This document shows, one piece after another, positions 28,315 through 55,601 of a stretch of DNA of 64,000 bases (within the stretch, counting starts at the first letter, position 1; each line of letters starts with the position of its first letter). Origin of the DNA: Cyanophora paradoxa CCMP329 (taxonomy: Eukaryota > Plantae > Glaucophyta); contig QPMI01000129.1 of the NCBI GenBank assembly GCA_004431415.1, positions 248,001 to 312,000 of the forward strand, given 5' to 3'. A program made the position numbers and the translations under genes. The notes below the pieces were generated by a model, which saw nothing but the letters and a program-made list of their open reading frames with translations, made no database searches and was not told the origin of the DNA.

Positions 28315-28829
28315 CCGGGCGTCGTGCCCAGGCCGGAGATCGACTGGCGCTGGGATCGAGCGAATACGCCTGGCATGCACAGCCTGACCCTAACAGCGAC
28401 AGGTGTCGTACGCAACTTGGGTTGGTTGCGCTGCGGACGCTGGTGGGCCTATCCGCTGTTGGTCTATCAGCGCTAGCGCCACAGGAGTGCTCTCCTGCGC
28501 AGGGCGCTGATCGGAGAGTCAGCTGACTGGCCGGCTGGTGCTGGGCCTGGTAGCCTGTACCCCGATCAACCACTGACACCTCAAACCTTTGCAGATACGC
28601 AGCGATCCGAGAGCGCCAAAAGCTCTATTCACAGGGCGATATTGTCTTGGAACTGCTCGGCAGCGACCCGACCAAGTGACGGCCGCCGTGACGCGTAATC
28701 GGTGAGCCAGCCGAGCCACAACTCCGCCCCCAGCCGCCCCTCGCAGACGGTAGAGGCGAGGATCGCTGCGACGAGTTTGCAGACAGCACCAGCCGATCGC
28801 AGCCGGATGCAGTTCTAACAGCCGACCAG

Positions 28830-40704: not shown

Positions 40705-40965
40705 TCGCTGCCCCCTACCGCAAGCGCTACCGGACCCCGACCCCGCTAGCGCTCGCAGGGCCAGCAGCTACACGGCGCTGGAGTTCGCTCAGCTTCGCTG
40801 CGACCTGCGGGTACAGGGACGATAGGGTCTGATTGAGGGTACACGCGACCCAGGAATCACCAACGCAGACCGACGACCGCGCCCCGGAGGCTCCTGAGCG
40901 TTAGCTATCTGGTCACTCGTAGTAGCGCGACAGCAGCGCCTTGGGTTGAGCCACGCCTCAGCACA

Positions 40966-46457: not shown

Positions 46458-49400
46458 ATGGCAGTCAACCAGCACCTCCCGTACGCGCTAGAGGACTGCG
46501 CGTCGTCGAGCTACCCATCGCTGCTGGAAGGCCTCTCGGCAGCCGTGGAGGCGAATGACGACGCGGAGCTCCGATACGGCATCCGCGCGATCACAAGGTA
46601 ATGCCGCGCGTGCAGGCCCGGAATGACCACTCGCTCCTCCCAATGACTGAACCGGCTTGCCCCCAATGACCGCGTGCATCAGGTGCCTCGATTTGCGTTA
46701 CAAGCTCGACCCCTCGACACGTGCGGGCATCGCGCGCGTACTCCTCGGCCGAATCCTCTCCGACCCATACGACGTACGTTCAGGACCCTTAATTGCTGCG
46801 GTGCTGCTGACACCGCTCTACGCCCTTGCAGCATGTCCGCCAAGCAAAGCGGATCGGTCTGCTCACCCGTATCCTCAAGAAGCGCCGCAATGTCCCGCTC
46901 GAAATCGCCTGGAGACCGGTTCGCGCCCGCGCGCTCTTTCTTGGCGCACGATGGATGTTGCCCCACTGGGCCAGGCGGTATTATGACGCCGCACCCTCGC
47001 AGCTGTACGACCTCGTGCAGGACACGGTGATCGCTCGCGCGGACAGGGGCTTCGCGGGGCGAGGGATCAGGGAGGTGTACGGCTCGGGCCTGCTGCAGCT
47101 CGTGGAGCACGCGCGGCGCTTCTTCCCGGCGAGCGCGGCCGCCGAGATCGTGGCGGAGCTGAAGCCGCAGTTCTGCCCGCACGACTGGCACGCGTCCTTC
47201 CGGGCGCAGGCGCTCCTCGTGACGTTCATGCCGACGCACCAGGGCCTCCACGAGCCCTGGTTCGCCGACGTCCTTCACTGGCTCGAGTACTACGGTCCGC
47301 CCTGCCCTGCCCCCGCCCCCGCGGAGAGCCGCGCCCCGCTCACTCCTGTGCGAGTAGAGACGGCGTCCGAGTGGATGTCTGTCTGGCTCGGCCTGTGCGG
47401 CCCCGCCCCGCGCCCCCGAGCGCCGGTCGGCCGGCGTGACCGGGCGGGCGTGCAGGCTCTCGCGGCTGGCGAAGGACAGTTGGCGGCTGCGTGTGCCGGG
47501 GGGCGAGGCGGACGCGGAGGAGGACGGGGACGGGGAGGGCGAAGGCGAGGACCCCGACGCCGACGCCGAGGGCGAGGAGCCCGTCCCCGTCCCCGCCCCC
47601 GCAGCCGCCGGCCCGCCCGGCCCGCCGCCCCCGCCGGACTGGGCGCCCCTCGTGCCCTGGCTCTTCGCGCGGCTCCTGCGCGACCTCGAGCTGCCCGTCG
47701 GGGGCGGCCGCGTCGGCAGCGCCAAGATCGACTCGGCCGTGCGCCCGCCCGGCCGGCCCGCCCCGCCCCCGCCCCCGCGCCGACGCAGGGCTCCCAGGGC
47801 GTGCCGGCGGAGACGCGCGCGTGCCTGGCGCACGTCTACCGAAGCGCGCGGGACCACCGCGTGAGCCGGTGCGCCGATCCGCCCGCCCTGCCCCGCTCGC
47901 TCCCGGGGGGGCGCCGGTTGAGGGGCCGGCAGGGTGGTGAAGATCCTGGTGTACACGATGAAGCCGGCGGGGCCCGACGGGAAGCCGACGGCCGTCCTCG
48001 GGGGCCTCGAGCGCCTCCTCGGCACCGTCGGGTGCGAGGACCCTCCCGCGCGCCTGCCTGGGGGCGCTTCGGGCGCCTCAGACGAGCCCGCGCAGGCCGT
48101 ACTTCCACCCGTCGAACAGCGGGGGCCACTCGAACAGCCTCGCGCGCCTCGTCTCCGCCCTCGTCGACACCTTCGCCGCCCGCCTGCAGGCTCGCCCTCC
48201 CCCGCCCCGCCCCCTCTCCCCCGAGCGCGAGAGTGAGGCCCCAGCGCAGGTCGAGCGGAAGCACGCCGCCAGCCCGCTCGCCGCCGCCTACCCGCACCCC
48301 GACGGTGCGCGCTTGCCCGCGCGGCGGGGGCGACGTGGGCGGGGATGACGGCGGGGGCAGCGCTGGGCGAGGCGGACGTGGCGGCCTTCGCGGAGCTCCT
48401 CCTCCCGCACCTCAACCTCTCCCTCTTCTCCAAGGCCCGCCCCGCCCCGCCCCGCCCGCCCCGCACCCCGCTGACGCGCATCGCCCCGCAGAGCGGCTCG
48501 TTGTCGCAGGCAGCGATCGGGTGCATGCGGCAGATGGCGTACCTGGCCCCGCAGGCGGCTCTCGCCCCGCTCCTCGCCGACCGCATCCTCCCCGCCCTCG
48601 GCCTCGGCCCCGCCCTCGACGAGCGCGTCCTCGCCGCCGCCCACCACGTGCCCGCCCCGCCCGCGCCCTGCCCCGCCCGCCCCGCCCGCCCCGCCCGAGA
48701 GCGCGGGCAGACGATCGGGGCGATCGAGGCGCTGAGCGCGCTGGCGCACGCGCTGCTCTGGCGCGACCTGCGGCCGCGCGTCCCCGTGCCCCTCCTCGAC
48801 CTCCTCAACGCGACGTGCGCCCCTGAGGCCCCGGCCCCGCGCCGCACGTCGCCCCTGATCCGCCGGCGGCCTTCACCAGGCTGCCCGGCATCGACGCGAA
48901 CGACCCCTCCAAGACCCGCGCCACGCTGCGCTTCTACACCAACGTGCTCTACTGCGCGCCGCTCGTCCCCGCGCCCCGCGGCGGCGGCGGCGGCGGCGGC
49001 TTCGACGGGATGGAGATCGACGGGGCCGGGGACGAGGCGGAGGAGGAGGCGCGGCGGGCGAGCCACGGGTTCGGGGAGTGGGCCGAGGGCTTCCTCGGGC
49101 GCCTCCTCGAGATGCTGGGCCACGCCGAGAAGCCCAAGAAGGGCAAGGACGCGCAGGAGGCGCGCCGGCCCGCCCTCGCCCTCGCCCCCCCCCCGCCCGC
49201 CCCGCTTGACGTGGCGGGGGCAGGAGTGGGACGCGTTCCTGCTGCAGCGCGCGGCGGAGCTGCTCTTCGCGCAGCTGGCGTCGGGCGGGGCGGGCGGGGG
49301 CCTGTACGACTCGGCCCTGGACCGCGTCGTGGCCCTCGTCTCGGACCGCGAGCTCCCCAACGCCCGCAAGCAGGCCCGCCCCGCCCCGCCGCCCCGCCCC

Positions 49401-52400
49401 CGGCCCCGCCCTGACCGCCCCGCGCGGCAGGTCTCGCTGGTCGTGGGCGCCGCGGTCGCCGCGCACCCGGAGCGCGCCCTGCCCCGCTTCCTCCGCATCG
49501 CCGAGCGCGCCCTCGACCCCGCCTCCCACCCCGCCGACTCGGAGTGGACCGTGCGCCCGCCCTCGCACCGCCCCGGCGCGCCGCGCTGAGCTCGGGCAGT
49601 GGCACGTGGGCCTGCTGGCGCAGGCGGTGCGGCGGGCGGGGGCGGCCCTCCTCAAGCACCTCCCCGCCCTCCGCCGCCTCCTCGACGCCGCCTTCGCCGA
49701 CGCCGGCAAGAAGAAGGCCCGCCCCGCCCCGCCCCCCCCCCCCCGCTCCTCGGCGTCCGAGGGGCGGCCTGCGCAGGTGGTCAAGGCGGGGGGGAAGCTG
49801 CTGCGGCGGGTGCTCTGGGCCCTCACCGCCGTCTACACTACCGACCTCCGCTCCCTCCCGCCCTCCGCCTGGAAGGTCCGCCCCCTCTCCCTTCCTTCTC
49901 CCCCCGCCCCTTCTCCCCTCTCTTTCGTCCTTTCCTCCATCCGTTCGTTTGGGAGGGTACCCGCGCCGAATCACACGCGCGGCCGCTCCTCCGTGCGGCC
50001 CCGGTGCAAAACGCGCGCGGCGAGGGATTCCGTGCTATTGCTTTACGCTGCGCCCTTTATCTGTGGGCCCCGCGTCAGTTTCGGCCGGGACAGGTCGTCT
50101 CCTCTTCTTTTCTCGCTCGTGCAACCCGCGCCGAATCACACGCGCGGCCGCTCCTCCGTGCGGCCCCGGTGCACAACGGCCGCGCAAAGGGAATCCGTGC
50201 TATTGCTTTACGCTGCGCCCGCTTCGTGGGCCCCGCGTCAGTTTCGGCCGGGACACCCCTGCTCGCCCCCTCCCCTTCGACTCCCCTCCCGCTCCCGACA
50301 GAAGGCGGCGCCTTCTCCCGTGGCGCTGCCTTCGCTCGTGGAGCGCACATTCCCGGAGATTGCATGCGCCGGCTTCTCTCAGTGGGCTCAGGCGCCTATT
50401 GCCCTCCGCATATCCTCCCCTCTCCATCTAGAGACGCCCTCCCGCGCCCTGACACGGACGGCGGCGCTTCCCACATAGCGCCTTCGGTATGGTGTGCCGC
50501 GGAGAGGACGCTAGGGGGGTTTGTTGCAGCGGAGAGCCGCCTCTGTGGCTCCGCCCGCACAAGTAGGCCCCCACATCGGACGCGCCCGCGCACCCCTCCT
50601 AGGGCGCCCTGCCTTCCCCCCCCCCCGGCCCCGGCGCCACCGTCCCTCGGTGCTAGATCCCCTCGGGCGCCCCCTCCGCCGGGCGCCGCCCTGGCCCCGT
50701 GCGCAAGATGACGCCCGGACATAAACATTCTTCACTCTCACTCTATTAGCCTGACTTTTCTAATTATGTGCGGGCGTCCTTTCTTCGTCGCCCTCATCTC
50801 TGATAGCCGGCGGGGGCACCCTCCACGGGCGTGGCGCCCCTCTGGCGCCCCGCCTTTCTTTCGCGGTGTCAGATCGCCCGTGTGGTATTTTACGCCGGCC
50901 GCGACCCCCGTGCGGCCGGGGTCAGATGACACTCGAACATTCTTTTCGTCCTTCTCCTCCTCGTCTTTTGCCCGCTTCAATTTCGCCCTCGCCTGCGCGC
51001 CGCGCTCTGAGCCGGGGCGCGCAGGAGGAGGGGGAGCTGTGGAAGGAGTGGGGCCGCCGCTTCCGCATGAAGGACGAGCTGCAGGTCACCTGGCACGTCC
51101 CCTCCCCCGAGGAGGCCGCCGCCGTGCGCCCGCCCCGCCCCGCCCCGCCCCGCCCTCTTCCTCCCCTCACCTCCTGCGAAGGCGCGGGCGCTCGCCGGGG
51201 CGTACCTGGCGGGCCCGCTGGCGACGCTGCGGGACGGGGCGGCGACGGCCCCGCGGGAGGCGCTCTACGCGGCGCTGCAGACGCTCGTCGCCGTCGCCCG
51301 CGGCTCGACCGCCATGCTCGACGACTGGCTCCCCGAGGGCGACGCCGCCGCCCCGGCCTCCCCCGAGGAGGAGGGCGGCGAGGGCGCGCACGCCCGCCCC
51401 AAGCGCCTCCTCCCGCCCCTCCCCGCCGGCCAGCTGCCCCGCGCCGCCCCGAGCTCCTACCCGGGGCTCCCCCCCGAGGGCCCCGCCGCCTTCCTCCCCG
51501 TCCTCTCCGCCCTGGCGCGGGGCGCGCTGGGGCGGGGCGGGGCGCGGGAGACGGACGTGGCGGGGGCCGTACTGGTGACGAAGCTCTGCCACGTGCTGCT
51601 CAACGTGCGGGGCGGCGGGGAGCACGAGCTCTCGCAGCACTACCTCGGCACCCGCCGCCGCGCCTGCTCCTACTTCCGGGGCATCCAGAAGGAGCTCGTC
51701 TTCGAGCCCCGGGCGCAGCCGCGGGCCCTCCTCGTCGAGCAGGCCTACCAGCAGCACCAGCGCCGCCTCGACTACAACGGGATGTGCGTCCCCTACGGGG
51801 CCGCGCAGCGCGCGCTGCTCGCGGACCTCGAGGCCCTCTCCGCGCACCCCTTCGCCAAGGTCCGCAAGAAGGCGCAGGGGAGCCTCCTGGCGGCGGCCCG
51901 GCGCTACCCGCCCGCCCTCAACGCCCTCGTCCCCCGCCTCATCGACGCCCTCCGCGAGCGGGCCCCGCCCCGCCCCGCCCCCGCGGCGGCCGCGGCGGCC
52001 CCGGCCCGGGCGAGGGCGGGCAGCCGCAGCAGCGGCAGCTGGCGGTGCCGGGCGGCGGCGCGCGGTCGGGCTCGCCGGCGGTGGGGGCGGCGACGCCGGA
52101 GGAGCGGGCGGTGGAGGACCGGGTGACGGCGGCCTGCTGCCTGCTCCAGTCCGTCCACCTCGTCCGCCGCATCACGCGCGACTGGCGCCTCGCCGCCCGC
52201 TTCGCCCGCGCCATCCTCGCCACCTCGCACCACGAGAAGCTCTCCCTGCAGTCCCGCCTCGCCAACCTCTTCTTCATCGTCGCCATCGGCACGCGCCCGC
52301 TGCCGCTTGCCGACGAGGCCGACCGGCGCGTCCGCTCCGACCTCTTCCACCACCTCCTCGACCTCCTCGACGCCTCCTGCGCCCCCGCCCCCGCGCCGGC

Positions 52401-54162
52401 CCCGGCCCCCGCTTCCTCCGACGCTGCGGCGCCCTCCTCCTCCTCCTCCTCGGGGGCGGCGGCGCCGCTGCACTGGCGGTACCAGCTGATGGCGCTGACG
52501 TCGGCCTCGCTGCTGCTGCGGCCCGACGACGCCGAGCCGTGCCCGCCGCGCGCCGTCGCCACCTTCTTCCGCCTCGCCGCCTCCGACCTCGCCCCGCTCC
52601 GCCAGGCCCGCCCCGCCCCGCCCTCGGCCCCCCGCCCCCTGCTTCGCCCTGATGCGGGCGCAGGTGGCGCTGCACGCGGTGACGGCGCTGCTGCGGGCGT
52701 ACCGCCCGCCCCCGGCGGGGCCGCTGCCGGCGGGGGCCGAGGAGCCGGGCGAGCCGGACGCCGCCCTCTTCGACGAGGACCCGCCTCGGACCCCGCCCGC
52801 TGGGACGGTCCGCCCCTCCCCGCCCTCCTCCCGCGCTCCCTGCGTTGCCGACGGGCGGGGCGGCAGGGACGGACTTCCTGGAGCACACTTTCGAGGGCTG
52901 GCGCCCGGCTCGCGCGCCGCGGGGGCCCGCATGCGCGCCCGCAAGGCGGCCCGCCTGGGGGCGCGGGGCGGGGCGTCGGAGGGGAACCGGGCGGCGGTGC
53001 TCGCGGCGGTGCGGGGTGCGTGGAGGACGGGGCGCTGCTGGACCGCGTGGTGGGTTCATGGCCCGCGACCACCACTACGGCGACGCCGAGGCGGCGGCGG
53101 CGCCGCCCTCGGCCGCCTCGGCAACGGCGGCGGCATCGGTCCGCCCCGCCCCTCCCGCGCCCGTCCTGCGTGTGCGCCGAGCTGAGGGGGCGGCAGCGGA
53201 CGTGCTGGGGGACGTGCTGGCGTCGGCGGCGGGGGGGCGGGGCCACCGGGCGGCCTCCTCGCAGGAGGCCTTCGTGGCGCTCCACGCGGGGCTCGCGCAG
53301 GGCATCGCCCGCACCGCCGGGCCCGACGCCGCCCTCGGGCACCTCTGGCCCCTCCTCGAGAAGCTCGCCAGGACGACCTCCGAGCGGGACAACCAGTGCA
53401 CCTCCGCCGAGCTCGTGCGCCCCCGCCCCGCGCCCTCACCCCCTCCCTTCGTTCTTCCTTCCGCCGAGCCGGCCGCCAGTTCGCGGGGATCGTGCGGGGG
53501 AGCCGGCGGTGGCCCCTGGAGCGGCAGCGCGAGCTCTGGGGCCGGGCGCGGCCCCTGCTGCGCGCCTGCCTGGACGCGGCCGGCGGGGCGGAGAGCGTGG
53601 CCGACTGGGCCGGCGCCATCCGCTTCCTCGTCCACAACCGCGACCCGCGCCGCTTCCGGGTCCGCCCGCCCGCCCGCCCCGCCCCGCCCCGTCCTCACGC
53701 TCCCCCCTCCCCGCCCAGTGGCTCGCCGAGGAGCTCGTGTCCGCCGTGGAGGGCTCCCCCTCGACGTCGACGGCGGCGGAGGGCGCGGGGGCCGGGGCGG
53801 AGGCCGGGGCGGGGACGGCGGCGGCGCAGGCGAACCGCCTCAAGTTCCTGCAGCCGCTGCTCGACGAGTTCGACTGGAAGGCCCGCGGCCTCGCCGCCCG
53901 CCTCGTCGCCGCCCTCGTCCCCGGCCGCCTCCGCCACCCCTTCAAGCAGGTCCCCCCTCTCCTCTTCCCCTCCTCCTCCCCTCTTTCCCTCTCTCTCCTT
54001 TGGTCGGCTTCGTGCTTCCCTCGCGTCCCACTCGACGCCGGCGCTTCCTCGTAGCGCCGGCGTTATAGAGGGCGCGGAGAGGGACCTCGGGGGACCACCT
54101 TTGCGCCGCCCCGCTCCCCCCTCGGGCGCGGCGCACAAATGCACCCCCACAGCCCTCCCATC

Positions 54163-54204
<42 letters not shown>

Positions 54205-55601
54205 CCTCGGATGGACGCCCCGGGGCGCCTCGCTCACTGCCGCCGTGCAGGTGCGGGAGGAGATCGGGCGGTCGGTGATGTTCATCTCGTGGGGGGCCTG
54301 GGACCCCGTCGCCCCGGGGCGGCCCCCCGTCACCCGCCCCTACATCGCCGCCCTCTTCGACGCCCTCGCCCAGTGCGCCCCGCGCCCCGCTCCGCTTCGC
54401 CGCCCCCCGCTCACCCTTCTGCGAAGGGGCCTGGCGCGGTGCGAGGCGGAGGAGGCGCAGCCGGGGGCGACGGACGAGTCGCCGGAGGGGCGGGAGCGGA
54501 CGGCGCTGCGGGAGACGGCGCTCTTCGCCCTCATGCACTCCTTCCAGGCCGCCTGCGGGCGCTGCCTGCTGCCCTACCTGCTGCCCCCCGGCCCCGCCCC
54601 GCCCGCCCCGGAGGCCGCCCCCAGCGCGCGCTCCCTGTTCCTGCACGTGCTGCGGACGTGCCGGAAGCAGGGGCGGCCGGACCTGGTCGCGCAGGCCGAG
54701 TTCTTCGGGGGCCTCGTCGCGCACTCCAACTTCGCGGGGGGCGAGGCCGGCGTCGATGCCCTCCTCGCCTCCCTCCGCGCCCTCCTCGCCGACGAGGCCT
54801 GGCACGCCCGCGCCGTGCCCCTCCCCATCCTCCAGGCACGCCCCTTCCCCGCCCCGCAGCCTCCCCCTCCCCTCCCTCTCACACTGCACCCCCGGCGCAG
54901 ATGCTGCTGTTCACGCACCTGTTCCTGCTGCCGGCGGAGCAGCAGGCGGCGGCCCTCGACATCGTCCTCGCCCTCCTCCAGGACCCCCAGCTCGAGGCCC
55001 GCCCGCCCGCCCGCCCGCCCGCCCGCCCCTGCCCTCACTTGCGCCGGCGCCTCACCGCCGGCTTCAGGTCCGCGAGGCGGCCGGCCTGGCGATGGCGAGC
55101 CTGGCCCGCATGCGCGCCACCGCCCCCGAGCTCCAGGTCCGCCCCCCGCCCCCGCACCCCACGCGCCCGCGGGGGCGCGCTGAGCGCGGGGCAGCGGGAG
55201 GCGCTGGTGCGGCGGTTCGGGAAGCTGGCGGAGGGGGCGGGGGCGGGACCGGAGGCGGAGCGGAGGCGGCACGCGGGGTGCCTGGGCCTCGTCGCCGTCC
55301 TCCACTCGTCCCCCTACGACGTGCCGCCCTGGATGCCGCCCCTCGTCGCCCGCATCGCCCGCATCGGCACCCAGGACCCCAGCGTCCGCCCCTCCCCTCG
55401 GCGGCCTTCGACCGCTTTCGCGCAAGTGCCTGACGTGCGCCCCGGGCGCGGCAGGCGGTGGTGCGGGCGTCGGCGCGCAAGGGGCTGCAGGACTTCAAGA
55501 AGAGCCACGTGGACGACTGGGCCAACGACAAGCTTAAGTTCGACGAGGAGCAGCTCGAGGCGCTCCACTCGGTCGTCCTCCAGCACAACTACTTCTGTTA
55601 G
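46458..55601 (+). CDS. PSME4: Proteasome activator PA200/Blm10
   Basis: PYFHPSNSG, LPGIDANDPSKT, TWHVPS, HWRYQ, LRHPFKQVRE, RRHAGCLGL...SSPYDVPPWMP, C-terminus NYFC*. About 27 introns and a few probable homopolymer frameshifts. Confidence 0.95.
49959..50095 (+). ncRNA. Candidate H/ACA-like snoRNA A (PSME4 intron)
   Basis: Two hairpins with internal pockets. ACA at 50090-50092. Paralog of B. Confidence 0.7.
50124..50258 (+). ncRNA. Candidate H/ACA-like snoRNA B (tandem paralog of A)
   Basis: ~130-nt near-copy of A, differing mainly in the apical loop and hinge region. ACA at 50253-50255. Confidence 0.7.
50290..50415 (+). ncRNA. Candidate H/ACA-like snoRNA C
   Basis: cgctcc/ggagcg basal stem and 12-bp upper stem. 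ACA at hinge 50347-50349. Second hairpin cggag/ctccg followed by AUA at 50410-50412. Confidence 0.6.
50442..50578 (+). ncRNA. Candidate H/ACA snoRNA D
   Basis: Hairpin, canonical H box AGAGGA at 50503-50508, second hairpin ggggg/ccccc, ACA at 50573-50575. Confidence 0.75.
50590..50724 (+). ncRNA. Candidate H/ACA-like snoRNA E
   Basis: gcacc/ggtgc hairpin, AGA at 50655-50657, cgggcg/cgcccg hairpin, ACA at 50719-50721. Confidence 0.62.
50816..50942 (+). ncRNA. Candidate H/ACA-like snoRNA F
   Basis: gcacc/ggtgt hairpin, AGA at 50871-50873, hairpin with ccggccgc/gcggccgg upper stem, ACA at 50937-50939. Confidence 0.62.
54021..54154 (+). ncRNA. Candidate H/ACA-like snoRNA G (second long PSME4 intron, 53950-54250)
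   Basis: gacgccggcgct/agcgccggcgtt stem, AGA at 54078-54080, ggggg/ccccc hairpin with pocket, ACA at 54149-54151. Confidence 0.7.

Follow-up and report, generated by a model that had tools for sequence, protein, structure and literature searches.

A probable polycistronic cassette of box H/ACA snoRNA genes within a long PSME4 intron of the glaucophyte Cyanophora paradoxa

The PSME4 locus and its 1149-nt intron

The DNA analyzed here is a 64,000-nucleotide (nt) stretch of the genome of Cyanophora paradoxa CCMP329 (assembly GCA_004431415.1, contig QPMI01000129.1, positions 248,001 to 312,000), hereafter the window, and all coordinates count from its first letter. The window carries on its forward strand the gene for the proteasome activator PSME4/PA200/Blm10 (46458-55598, the approximate span from start codon to stop codon given by Pfam and protein homology), and one intron of this gene (49876-51024) holds six units, A to F, that resemble small nucleolar RNAs (snoRNAs) of the box H/ACA class. 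An earlier reading of the letters without database searches, hereafter the sequence-only reading, had proposed a polycistronic intronic H/ACA cluster with PSME4 as its host, and this proposal was supported by the splice joint, the folds, the enrichment of an H/ACA grammar, and the domain matches described below. Beyond that reading, the hinge boxes proved to be non-canonical, and a seventh unit, G, was found.

The intron is spliced, as RNA contigs skipped exactly 49876-51024 in X18 and X19, two RNA-type runs from one sample. It begins with GT, ends with AG, and contains a branch-like CTGAG near 51007. The view that a 1149-nt intron lies amid short introns was thus borne out in its coordinates, terminal dinucleotides, and splice joint; the remaining mappable PSME4 introns measure approximately 49-95 nt, save a second long intron of 301 nt (53950-54250), which was deduced from the sequence and a contiguous homologue alignment rather than from reads. 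Several PSME4 introns (at 49159, 49373, 49717, and others) seem by eye to start with GC rather than GT. Low-depth pieces of the 1149-nt intron, including the spacers between the units, were also present in X18 and X19, as expected of a precursor.

The DNA run displayed no differences from the window over the intron region, which is single-copy: DNA depth was flat across most of the intron and doubled on the 50 nt common to A and B. A high-copy repeat or element was ruled out by this depth, and the possibility raised by the sequence-only reading itself, that the units are fragments of a high-copy transposable element, therefore did not materialize. Extra partial matches of DNA reads were observed near unit E, and for this reason no weight was given to the extra RNA depth that X18 and X19 displayed there. 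A box C/D snoRNA reading was also rejected, as no RUGAUGA occurs in the intron.

The identity of the host gene was assessed by searching the spliced PSME4 model one exon at a time. Pfam PSME4_C was matched at 55195-55595 and HEAT_PSME4_mid, weakly, at 51025-51117. The exon piece 51182-51958 was 100% identical over 250 residues to the database protein P0001 (EukProt EP00741 Cyanophora paradoxa g1675.t1), and the next homologue, the database protein P0002 (39%), aligned along 47003-55595. The source of P0002 is a transcriptome, and its sequence is intron-less; P0002 was the only close kin returned by the homologue searches, which left homologues of other lengths uncovered, and no relative's genomic copy of the intron was obtained from them.

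Comparison with g1675.t1 revealed that the public gene model is wrong at PSME4. It runs to 50004, so that intron and snoRNA DNA (49876-50004) is translated as coding sequence, adds a 12-codon exon at approximately 50874-50909 within the snoRNA intron, and stops inside the second long intron (53950-54054 translated). Since the model ends there, the C-terminal exons backed by P0002 and Pfam are lost, and the PSME4_C exons 54251-55598 are dropped. The present analysis thus corrects a public gene model that reads into snoRNA DNA and lacks the C-terminal domain of PSME4.

Anatomy of the units

Units A to F are 127-142 nt long and lie on the sense strand; the GC content of the units is 67-79%, and the spacers between them consist of 56-87% pyrimidine, in good agreement with the six units of about 130 nt and the pyrimidine-rich spacers of the sequence-only reading. 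Folding yielded two single-stem hairpins with an internal pocket in every unit, as had been judged by eye, with the box 0-1 nt past the basal stem. ACA, or its accepted variant AUA (PMC6984369), directly follows the 3' hairpin in all seven units; the boxes expected within the 1149-nt intron are all in place, namely ACA at 50090 (A), 50253 (B), 50573 (D), 50719 (E), and 50937 (F), and AUA at 50410 (C). Counted back from the box, the first nucleotide 3' of the upper stem is found at 13-15 nt in most hairpins and at 14 nt in the 3' hairpins of A and B (A3/B3; hairpins and pockets are named in this way hereafter), the distance that had been estimated for their pocket top. From the last loop nucleotide to the box, the distance was 25-28 nt in every one of the 14 hairpins, a test that is partly circular because the hinge boxes were picked at the hairpin base; in human H/ACA RNAs, the loop-to-box distance is 24-28 nt (PMC5207380).

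Unit A (49959-50095, with its 5' end and its 3' end at ACA+3 presumed) reads CGAGGG at the hinge (50021), and unit B (50124-50258) reads AAAGGG (AAAGGGA with the following nucleotide, at 50186). The hinge is ACAUUC at 50347 in C (50289-50415), AGAGGA, a canonical H box, at 50503 in D (50440-50578; loop distances of 26 and 28), AGAUCC at 50655 in E (50588-50724), and AGAUCG at 50871 in F (50813-50942). Unit G (54020-54154) lies alone in the 301-nt intron, also on the forward strand, with AGAGGG (AGAGGGA) at 54078 and ACA at 54149. The hinges of B and G fit ANANNNA, an accepted H-box variant (PMC12218528), and those of C, E, and F carry ANA alone. Fungal H boxes vary at the sixth position and have G as the second nucleotide in nearly 80% (PMC5824354), and the AGA hinges observed here are thus not exotic.

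The folding check suggested with the sequence-only reading gave z-scores against shuffles of -5.6 for G, -4.3 for C, -2.8 for F, -2.1 for D, -1.6 for B, -1.1 for E, and -1.0 for A, and the Rfam check suggested alongside it returned no family. The two-hairpin fold is the energy minimum for C and G, and is within 0.5 kcal/mol of the minimum for E. A loose two-hairpin H/ACA grammar was run over both strands of the whole window and over dinucleotide-shuffled introns: the intron contained four matches, versus none in 149 of the 150 shuffles and one in the remaining shuffle. The whole-window scan recovered five of the seven units (B, C, E, F, and G) and about a dozen weaker matches elsewhere on both strands. 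The matches at 28718-28818 and 40770-40841 do not form two clean hairpins and have no terminal loop U; they are probably due to chance.

Units A and B form a tandem duplicate, 165 nt apart, as had been recognized. The accompanying statement that their differences fall mainly in loop and hinge was roughly right: three differences lie in the hinge, four in the 3' loop, three in the tail, three in the 5' lower stem, and one in a pocket nucleotide.

An inverted repeat (50710-50778, forward strand) pairs 50710-50724 with 50764-50778 in 14 of 15 positions (z = -4.4; 1 of 300 shuffles). It joins the 3' end of E, including the ACA box, to the E-F spacer and can be extended to approximately 50701-50791. 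Such pairing would make the ACA box and the 3' strand of E inaccessible in the precursor; the repeat could be a stem used in processing or an alternative fold, or it could have arisen as a small inverted duplication.

The apical loops were also compared with shuffles, all counts being post hoc. Of 12 independent hairpins, 10 have U as the last loop base (background 0.23), five have a loop ending in GU (0.027), and four have a loop with U at its start and GU at its end (0.011). A terminal loop U is enriched in human and yeast H/ACA RNAs and also occurs in 55-64% of ordinary human hairpins (PMC5207380), so that this feature by itself is ordinary. In the BIO motif, described in the CR7 domain of human telomerase RNA and in AluACA RNAs, the first U pairs with the penultimate G, the last U is unpaired, and two G-C/C-G pairs close the loop; it is a likely optimal Nhp2 site, most important when the 5' hairpin is suboptimal (PMC5207380). 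Loops of 8-9 nt in A5/B5, A3, and C5, with both hairpins of A among them, conform to the published definition, and those of G5, D3, F3, C3, and B3 conform in part. The CAB box (ugAG/UGAG), the mark of small Cajal body-specific RNAs, is absent from all loops of the units. The 5' loop of E (50614-50626) is a run of C and the sole loop without U at or near its end; no read difference is listed there.

RNA pieces and predicted rRNA targets

In run X20, probably an RNA library, a piece of unit A (49979-50084) was found at depth 26 and a piece of unit B (50144-50247) at depth 39, each running into Illumina adapter, and the flanking exons were not covered. Since A and B appeared without exon signal and with adapter at homologous ends, these separate pieces look like discrete small RNAs. 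The 8-letter loose contig ends in X20 are those expected when two contigs merge on a shared 22-nt end plus adapter, a pattern implying that the inserts of A and B terminate at corresponding positions; perhaps the molecules were primed inside the pocket. Each contig joins 5' and 3' hairpin sequence across the hinge, an observation in favor of two-hairpin RNAs. Stable accumulation was thereby indicated for A and B only.

Targets were sought on surrogate ribosomal RNAs (rRNAs), namely eukaryotic rDNA contigs from metagenomes that were fetched with a short universal pattern; 35 small-subunit (SSU), 34 large-subunit (LSU), and 7 5.8S sequences were aligned, three contigs were verified with Rfam, and no rRNA pattern was found in viral contigs. 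Many sites came close to a tie when the geometry of the scan was loose. On the consensus, the best scores of 12 independent pockets summed to 94.5 versus 79.0 +/- 8.4 for shuffled pockets (p about 0.03), with single-pocket p values of 0.018 for A3/B3, 0.035 for A5, 0.06 for F5, and 0.095 for E3. All targets given below are predictions.

For the 3' pocket shared by A and B, the 18S stretch GAAACUUAAAGGAAU that the sequence-only reading had put forward held up as the best conserved match, GAAACU[U]AAAGGAAU (GAAACU[U]AAAGG), with 6 + 6 pocket pairs; it includes one G-G mismatch, and in the per-species scan it tied with 18S GAAGUU[U]GAGGCAAU, which has no mismatch but three wobbles. We take the latter site to be yeast U1415 (Ψ1415, Ψ denoting pseudouridine), placed by counting back from Gm1428; yeast U1415 is a target of snR83. 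A5 would pair with 18S AUUUG[U]CUGGUU, corresponding to Arabidopsis Ψ1309 and soybean Ψ1308, in a tie with a second 18S site, and the one pocket change in B5 weakens this match. Both pockets of E match one 18S stretch, CUUCU[U]AGAGGGAC[U]: E3 matches CUUCU[U]AGAGGG, and E5 pairs 7/7 on one side 9 nt further on. The first U of this stretch is presumably human Ψ1445, mapped through human Um1442 = Arabidopsis Um1381.

On the LSU rRNA, unit F was predicted to target CGAAAGA[U]GGUG, with 7+3 Watson-Crick pairs, and CAUCUG[U]UAAAA, where some surrogates allow 6+4, and D3 may match GGCUUG[U]GGCAG, which lies three nucleotides beyond yeast Ψ2826; the D3 match is not significant alone. The LSU matches of F5, F3, and D3 are plausible and fall at positions that are not on the Arabidopsis list. 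The human Ψ1367 site scored well for F3 only with three extra nucleotides left unpaired and was ranked below the LSU site. G3 forms 7+4 Watson-Crick pairs at an 18S position where 34 of 35 surrogates have C, and a role for G3 as the guide of Arabidopsis Ψ950/951 does not fit. The targets of unit C are uncertain on the surrogates, and for C3, D5, E5, and G5 no convincing conserved rRNA target was obtained, their scores being at or below the shuffled mean.

Interpretation and comparison with known systems

Taken together, the intron is best read as a polycistronic cassette of box H/ACA snoRNA genes in a spliced PSME4 host, to which we assign a probability of about 0.88, with release, assembly, and Ψ formation modeled on the known family. 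The PSME4 pre-mRNA is transcribed and spliced. The excised intron would be cut in its pyrimidine-rich spacers and trimmed by exonucleases to RNAs of about 130-140 nt ending approximately 3 nt past ACA/AUA, as is partly indicated for A and B. Each hairpin would take up one set of Cbf5-Nop10-Nhp2-Gar1, for which the observed geometry offers Cbf5 the ANA/ACA triplet and offers Nhp2 an apical loop that ends in U or GU at a distance of 25-28 nt from the box. The pockets are predicted to base-pair with rRNA on either side of a uridine that sits 13-14 nt from the box and so to direct its pseudouridylation, and the units probably mark rRNA with pseudouridines. A and B would be a recent tandem duplicate, and PSME4 a constitutively transcribed carrier without a special regulatory role.

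Several observations weigh against this interpretation. The strict ANANNA H box occurs in D only, and the hinge of A has no ANA at all. The folding of A, B, and E is not significantly better than that of shuffled sequences; in A, B, D, and F the two-hairpin fold was constrained and lies 4.5-10 kcal/mol above the minimum, and the unconstrained minimum of A and B is another fold, approximately 7 kcal/mol lower. The RNA label of X20 is a guess, and its pieces end 11 nt short of the predicted ACA+3, beside the single-stranded pocket, although contigs do not define RNA ends. C to F were not seen as discrete pieces in X20, where contigs show presence and not absence and where G is outside the stretch covered. 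No Rfam family was matched, by gathering score over the whole window or by E-value over the intron, which excludes membership of a named family and not of the H/ACA class; most snoRNA families of Chlamydomonas are likewise lineage-specific. The target scores come from surrogate rRNAs, and most single-pocket scores are not significant. Finally, three best or tied-best matches fall on known Ψ sites (Arabidopsis Ψ1309, yeast Ψ1415, and human Ψ1445), which counts in favor of the cassette interpretation, but three of 12 is near what chance could give.

Of the alternatives, one partly overlaps the cassette interpretation and was given nearly even odds: the units are H/ACA-family RNAs, but among their hairpins or units, such as the 5' hairpins of A and E and the pockets of C, D, and G, some are orphan, decaying, or directed at small nuclear RNAs (snRNAs) or other RNAs. 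This reading agrees with the loss of the first A of the hinge box in A, whose 5' pocket differs from that of B, with the poly-C loop of E5, and with the scores of C3, D5, E5, and G5, rRNA only having been searched. Against it, A appears in X20 just as B does, and no CAB-like UGAG is seen in the loops; moreover, the low scores may be due to targets in variable parts of the rRNA, which the surrogate consensus masks, and G3 forms 7+4 pairs at an 18S site that is nearly always C in the surrogates. Chance hairpins of GC-rich DNA or transposable-element fragments, on the other hand, seem scarcely credible and are already largely refuted. The high GC content, the weak z-scores of A, B, and E, and the dozen or so background grammar matches would suit such an origin, yet the shuffle test, the uniform geometry, the single-copy DNA depth, and the discrete RNA pieces all contradict it, and the two strongest background matches fail to fold into two clean hairpins.

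It is also highly improbable that the units are single-hairpin ANA-box guides as in trypanosomes and Euglena, with the "hinge" boxes being the 3' boxes of separate RNAs. In C, E, F, and G, the hinge opens with ACA or AGA and has a base other than A at position six, which could be taken in this sense; however, the sixth position of the H box is known to vary and its second is mostly G in fungi (PMC5824354), the hairpins are strictly paired approximately 6-11 nt apart with long pyrimidine spacers after ACA/AUA only, and the A and B contigs of X20 continue across the hinge. As to the host, the position of the units in a PSME4 intron implies co-transcription, and nothing beyond it was found for the functional tie between proteasome-activator transcription and rRNA modification that the sequence-only reading had drawn. 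That PSME4 was selected as host, coupling the two, is improbable: seven units lie in one gene, and yeast Blm10 is reported to repress ribosome biogenesis through Sfp1 turnover (PMC3046052), but no paper linking PSME4 with snoRNA hosting was found, and in Ostreococcus the level of a snoRNA is not predicted by that of its host mRNA (PMC7671301).

A further proposal, which we regard as doubtful, is that glaucophyte H/ACA snoRNAs might use a shifted assembly code in which the hinge box shrinks to ANA or, as in A, disappears, and the affinity lost is made up through Nhp2 by BIO loops on 5' and 3' hairpins. The hint comes from a single pair: A is devoid of ANA and has a perfect 3' BIO loop, B has ANA and an imperfect 3' loop, and both were seen as RNA. 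If this code were true, BIO would be an old and general element of H/ACA assembly instead of a vertebrate telomerase/Alu speciality; if the BIO-type loops are functional, the A/B pair would be a natural test of the trade-off between Nhp2 and Cbf5 contacts in H/ACA assembly, with a bearing on telomerase RNA biogenesis.

Our literature searches found no snoRNA study of C. paradoxa, no glaucophyte snoRNA survey, and no paper on PSME4 as a snoRNA host, and the full BIO motif was found described only for human telomerase and Alu RNAs and not for algal guide snoRNAs. The analysis adds seven unannotated candidate H/ACA genes (six families) in an early-branching Archaeplastida lineage. The layout itself would not surprise a specialist, since intronic and polycistronic snoRNA organization has been described for plants, Chlamydomonas, Euglena, and Ostreococcus (PMC7671301), including the intronic polycistronic clusters of Chlamydomonas reinhardtii (Chen et al., 2008, as cited in PMC7671301 and PMC5122169). 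As far as these citing papers describe them, the clusters of Chlamydomonas and land plants share with the present one the nesting of several snoRNA genes, tandem isoforms included, in one intron of a protein-coding host, with a presumed common precursor; the differences are the glaucophyte lineage, the PSME4 host, and the lack of homology to any Rfam family. Intronic polycistronic clusters thus appear not to be confined to green algae and land plants.

Judged by sequence and folding, the units have the structural features of the canonical H/ACA class, apart from the strict H box, and belong to no named Rfam family. With yeast snR83, human SNORA67, and Arabidopsis snoR160 they share the hairpin-hinge-hairpin-ACA layout, the pocket spacing, the loop-to-box ruler, and the terminal loop U, whereas the Cyanophora hinges are mostly ANA without the sixth A, and A lacks ANA. 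Some predicted targets are equal as well (Ψ1415, Ψ1445, and TAIR U1306 = BID-seq 1309), although a shared target shows no orthology. The single-hairpin AGA-box guides of trypanosomes and Euglena resemble D, E, F, and G in having AGA right after a hairpin, but the Cyanophora units have two hairpins, end in ACA/AUA, and yielded RNA contigs across the hinge. Finally, the BIO-type loops display the pattern of telomerase and AluACA RNAs (first U, penultimate G, last unpaired U, and two G-C/C-G pairs), whereas in Cyanophora these loops occur on both 5' and 3' hairpins of what appear to be guide snoRNAs and are not accompanied by a CAB box.

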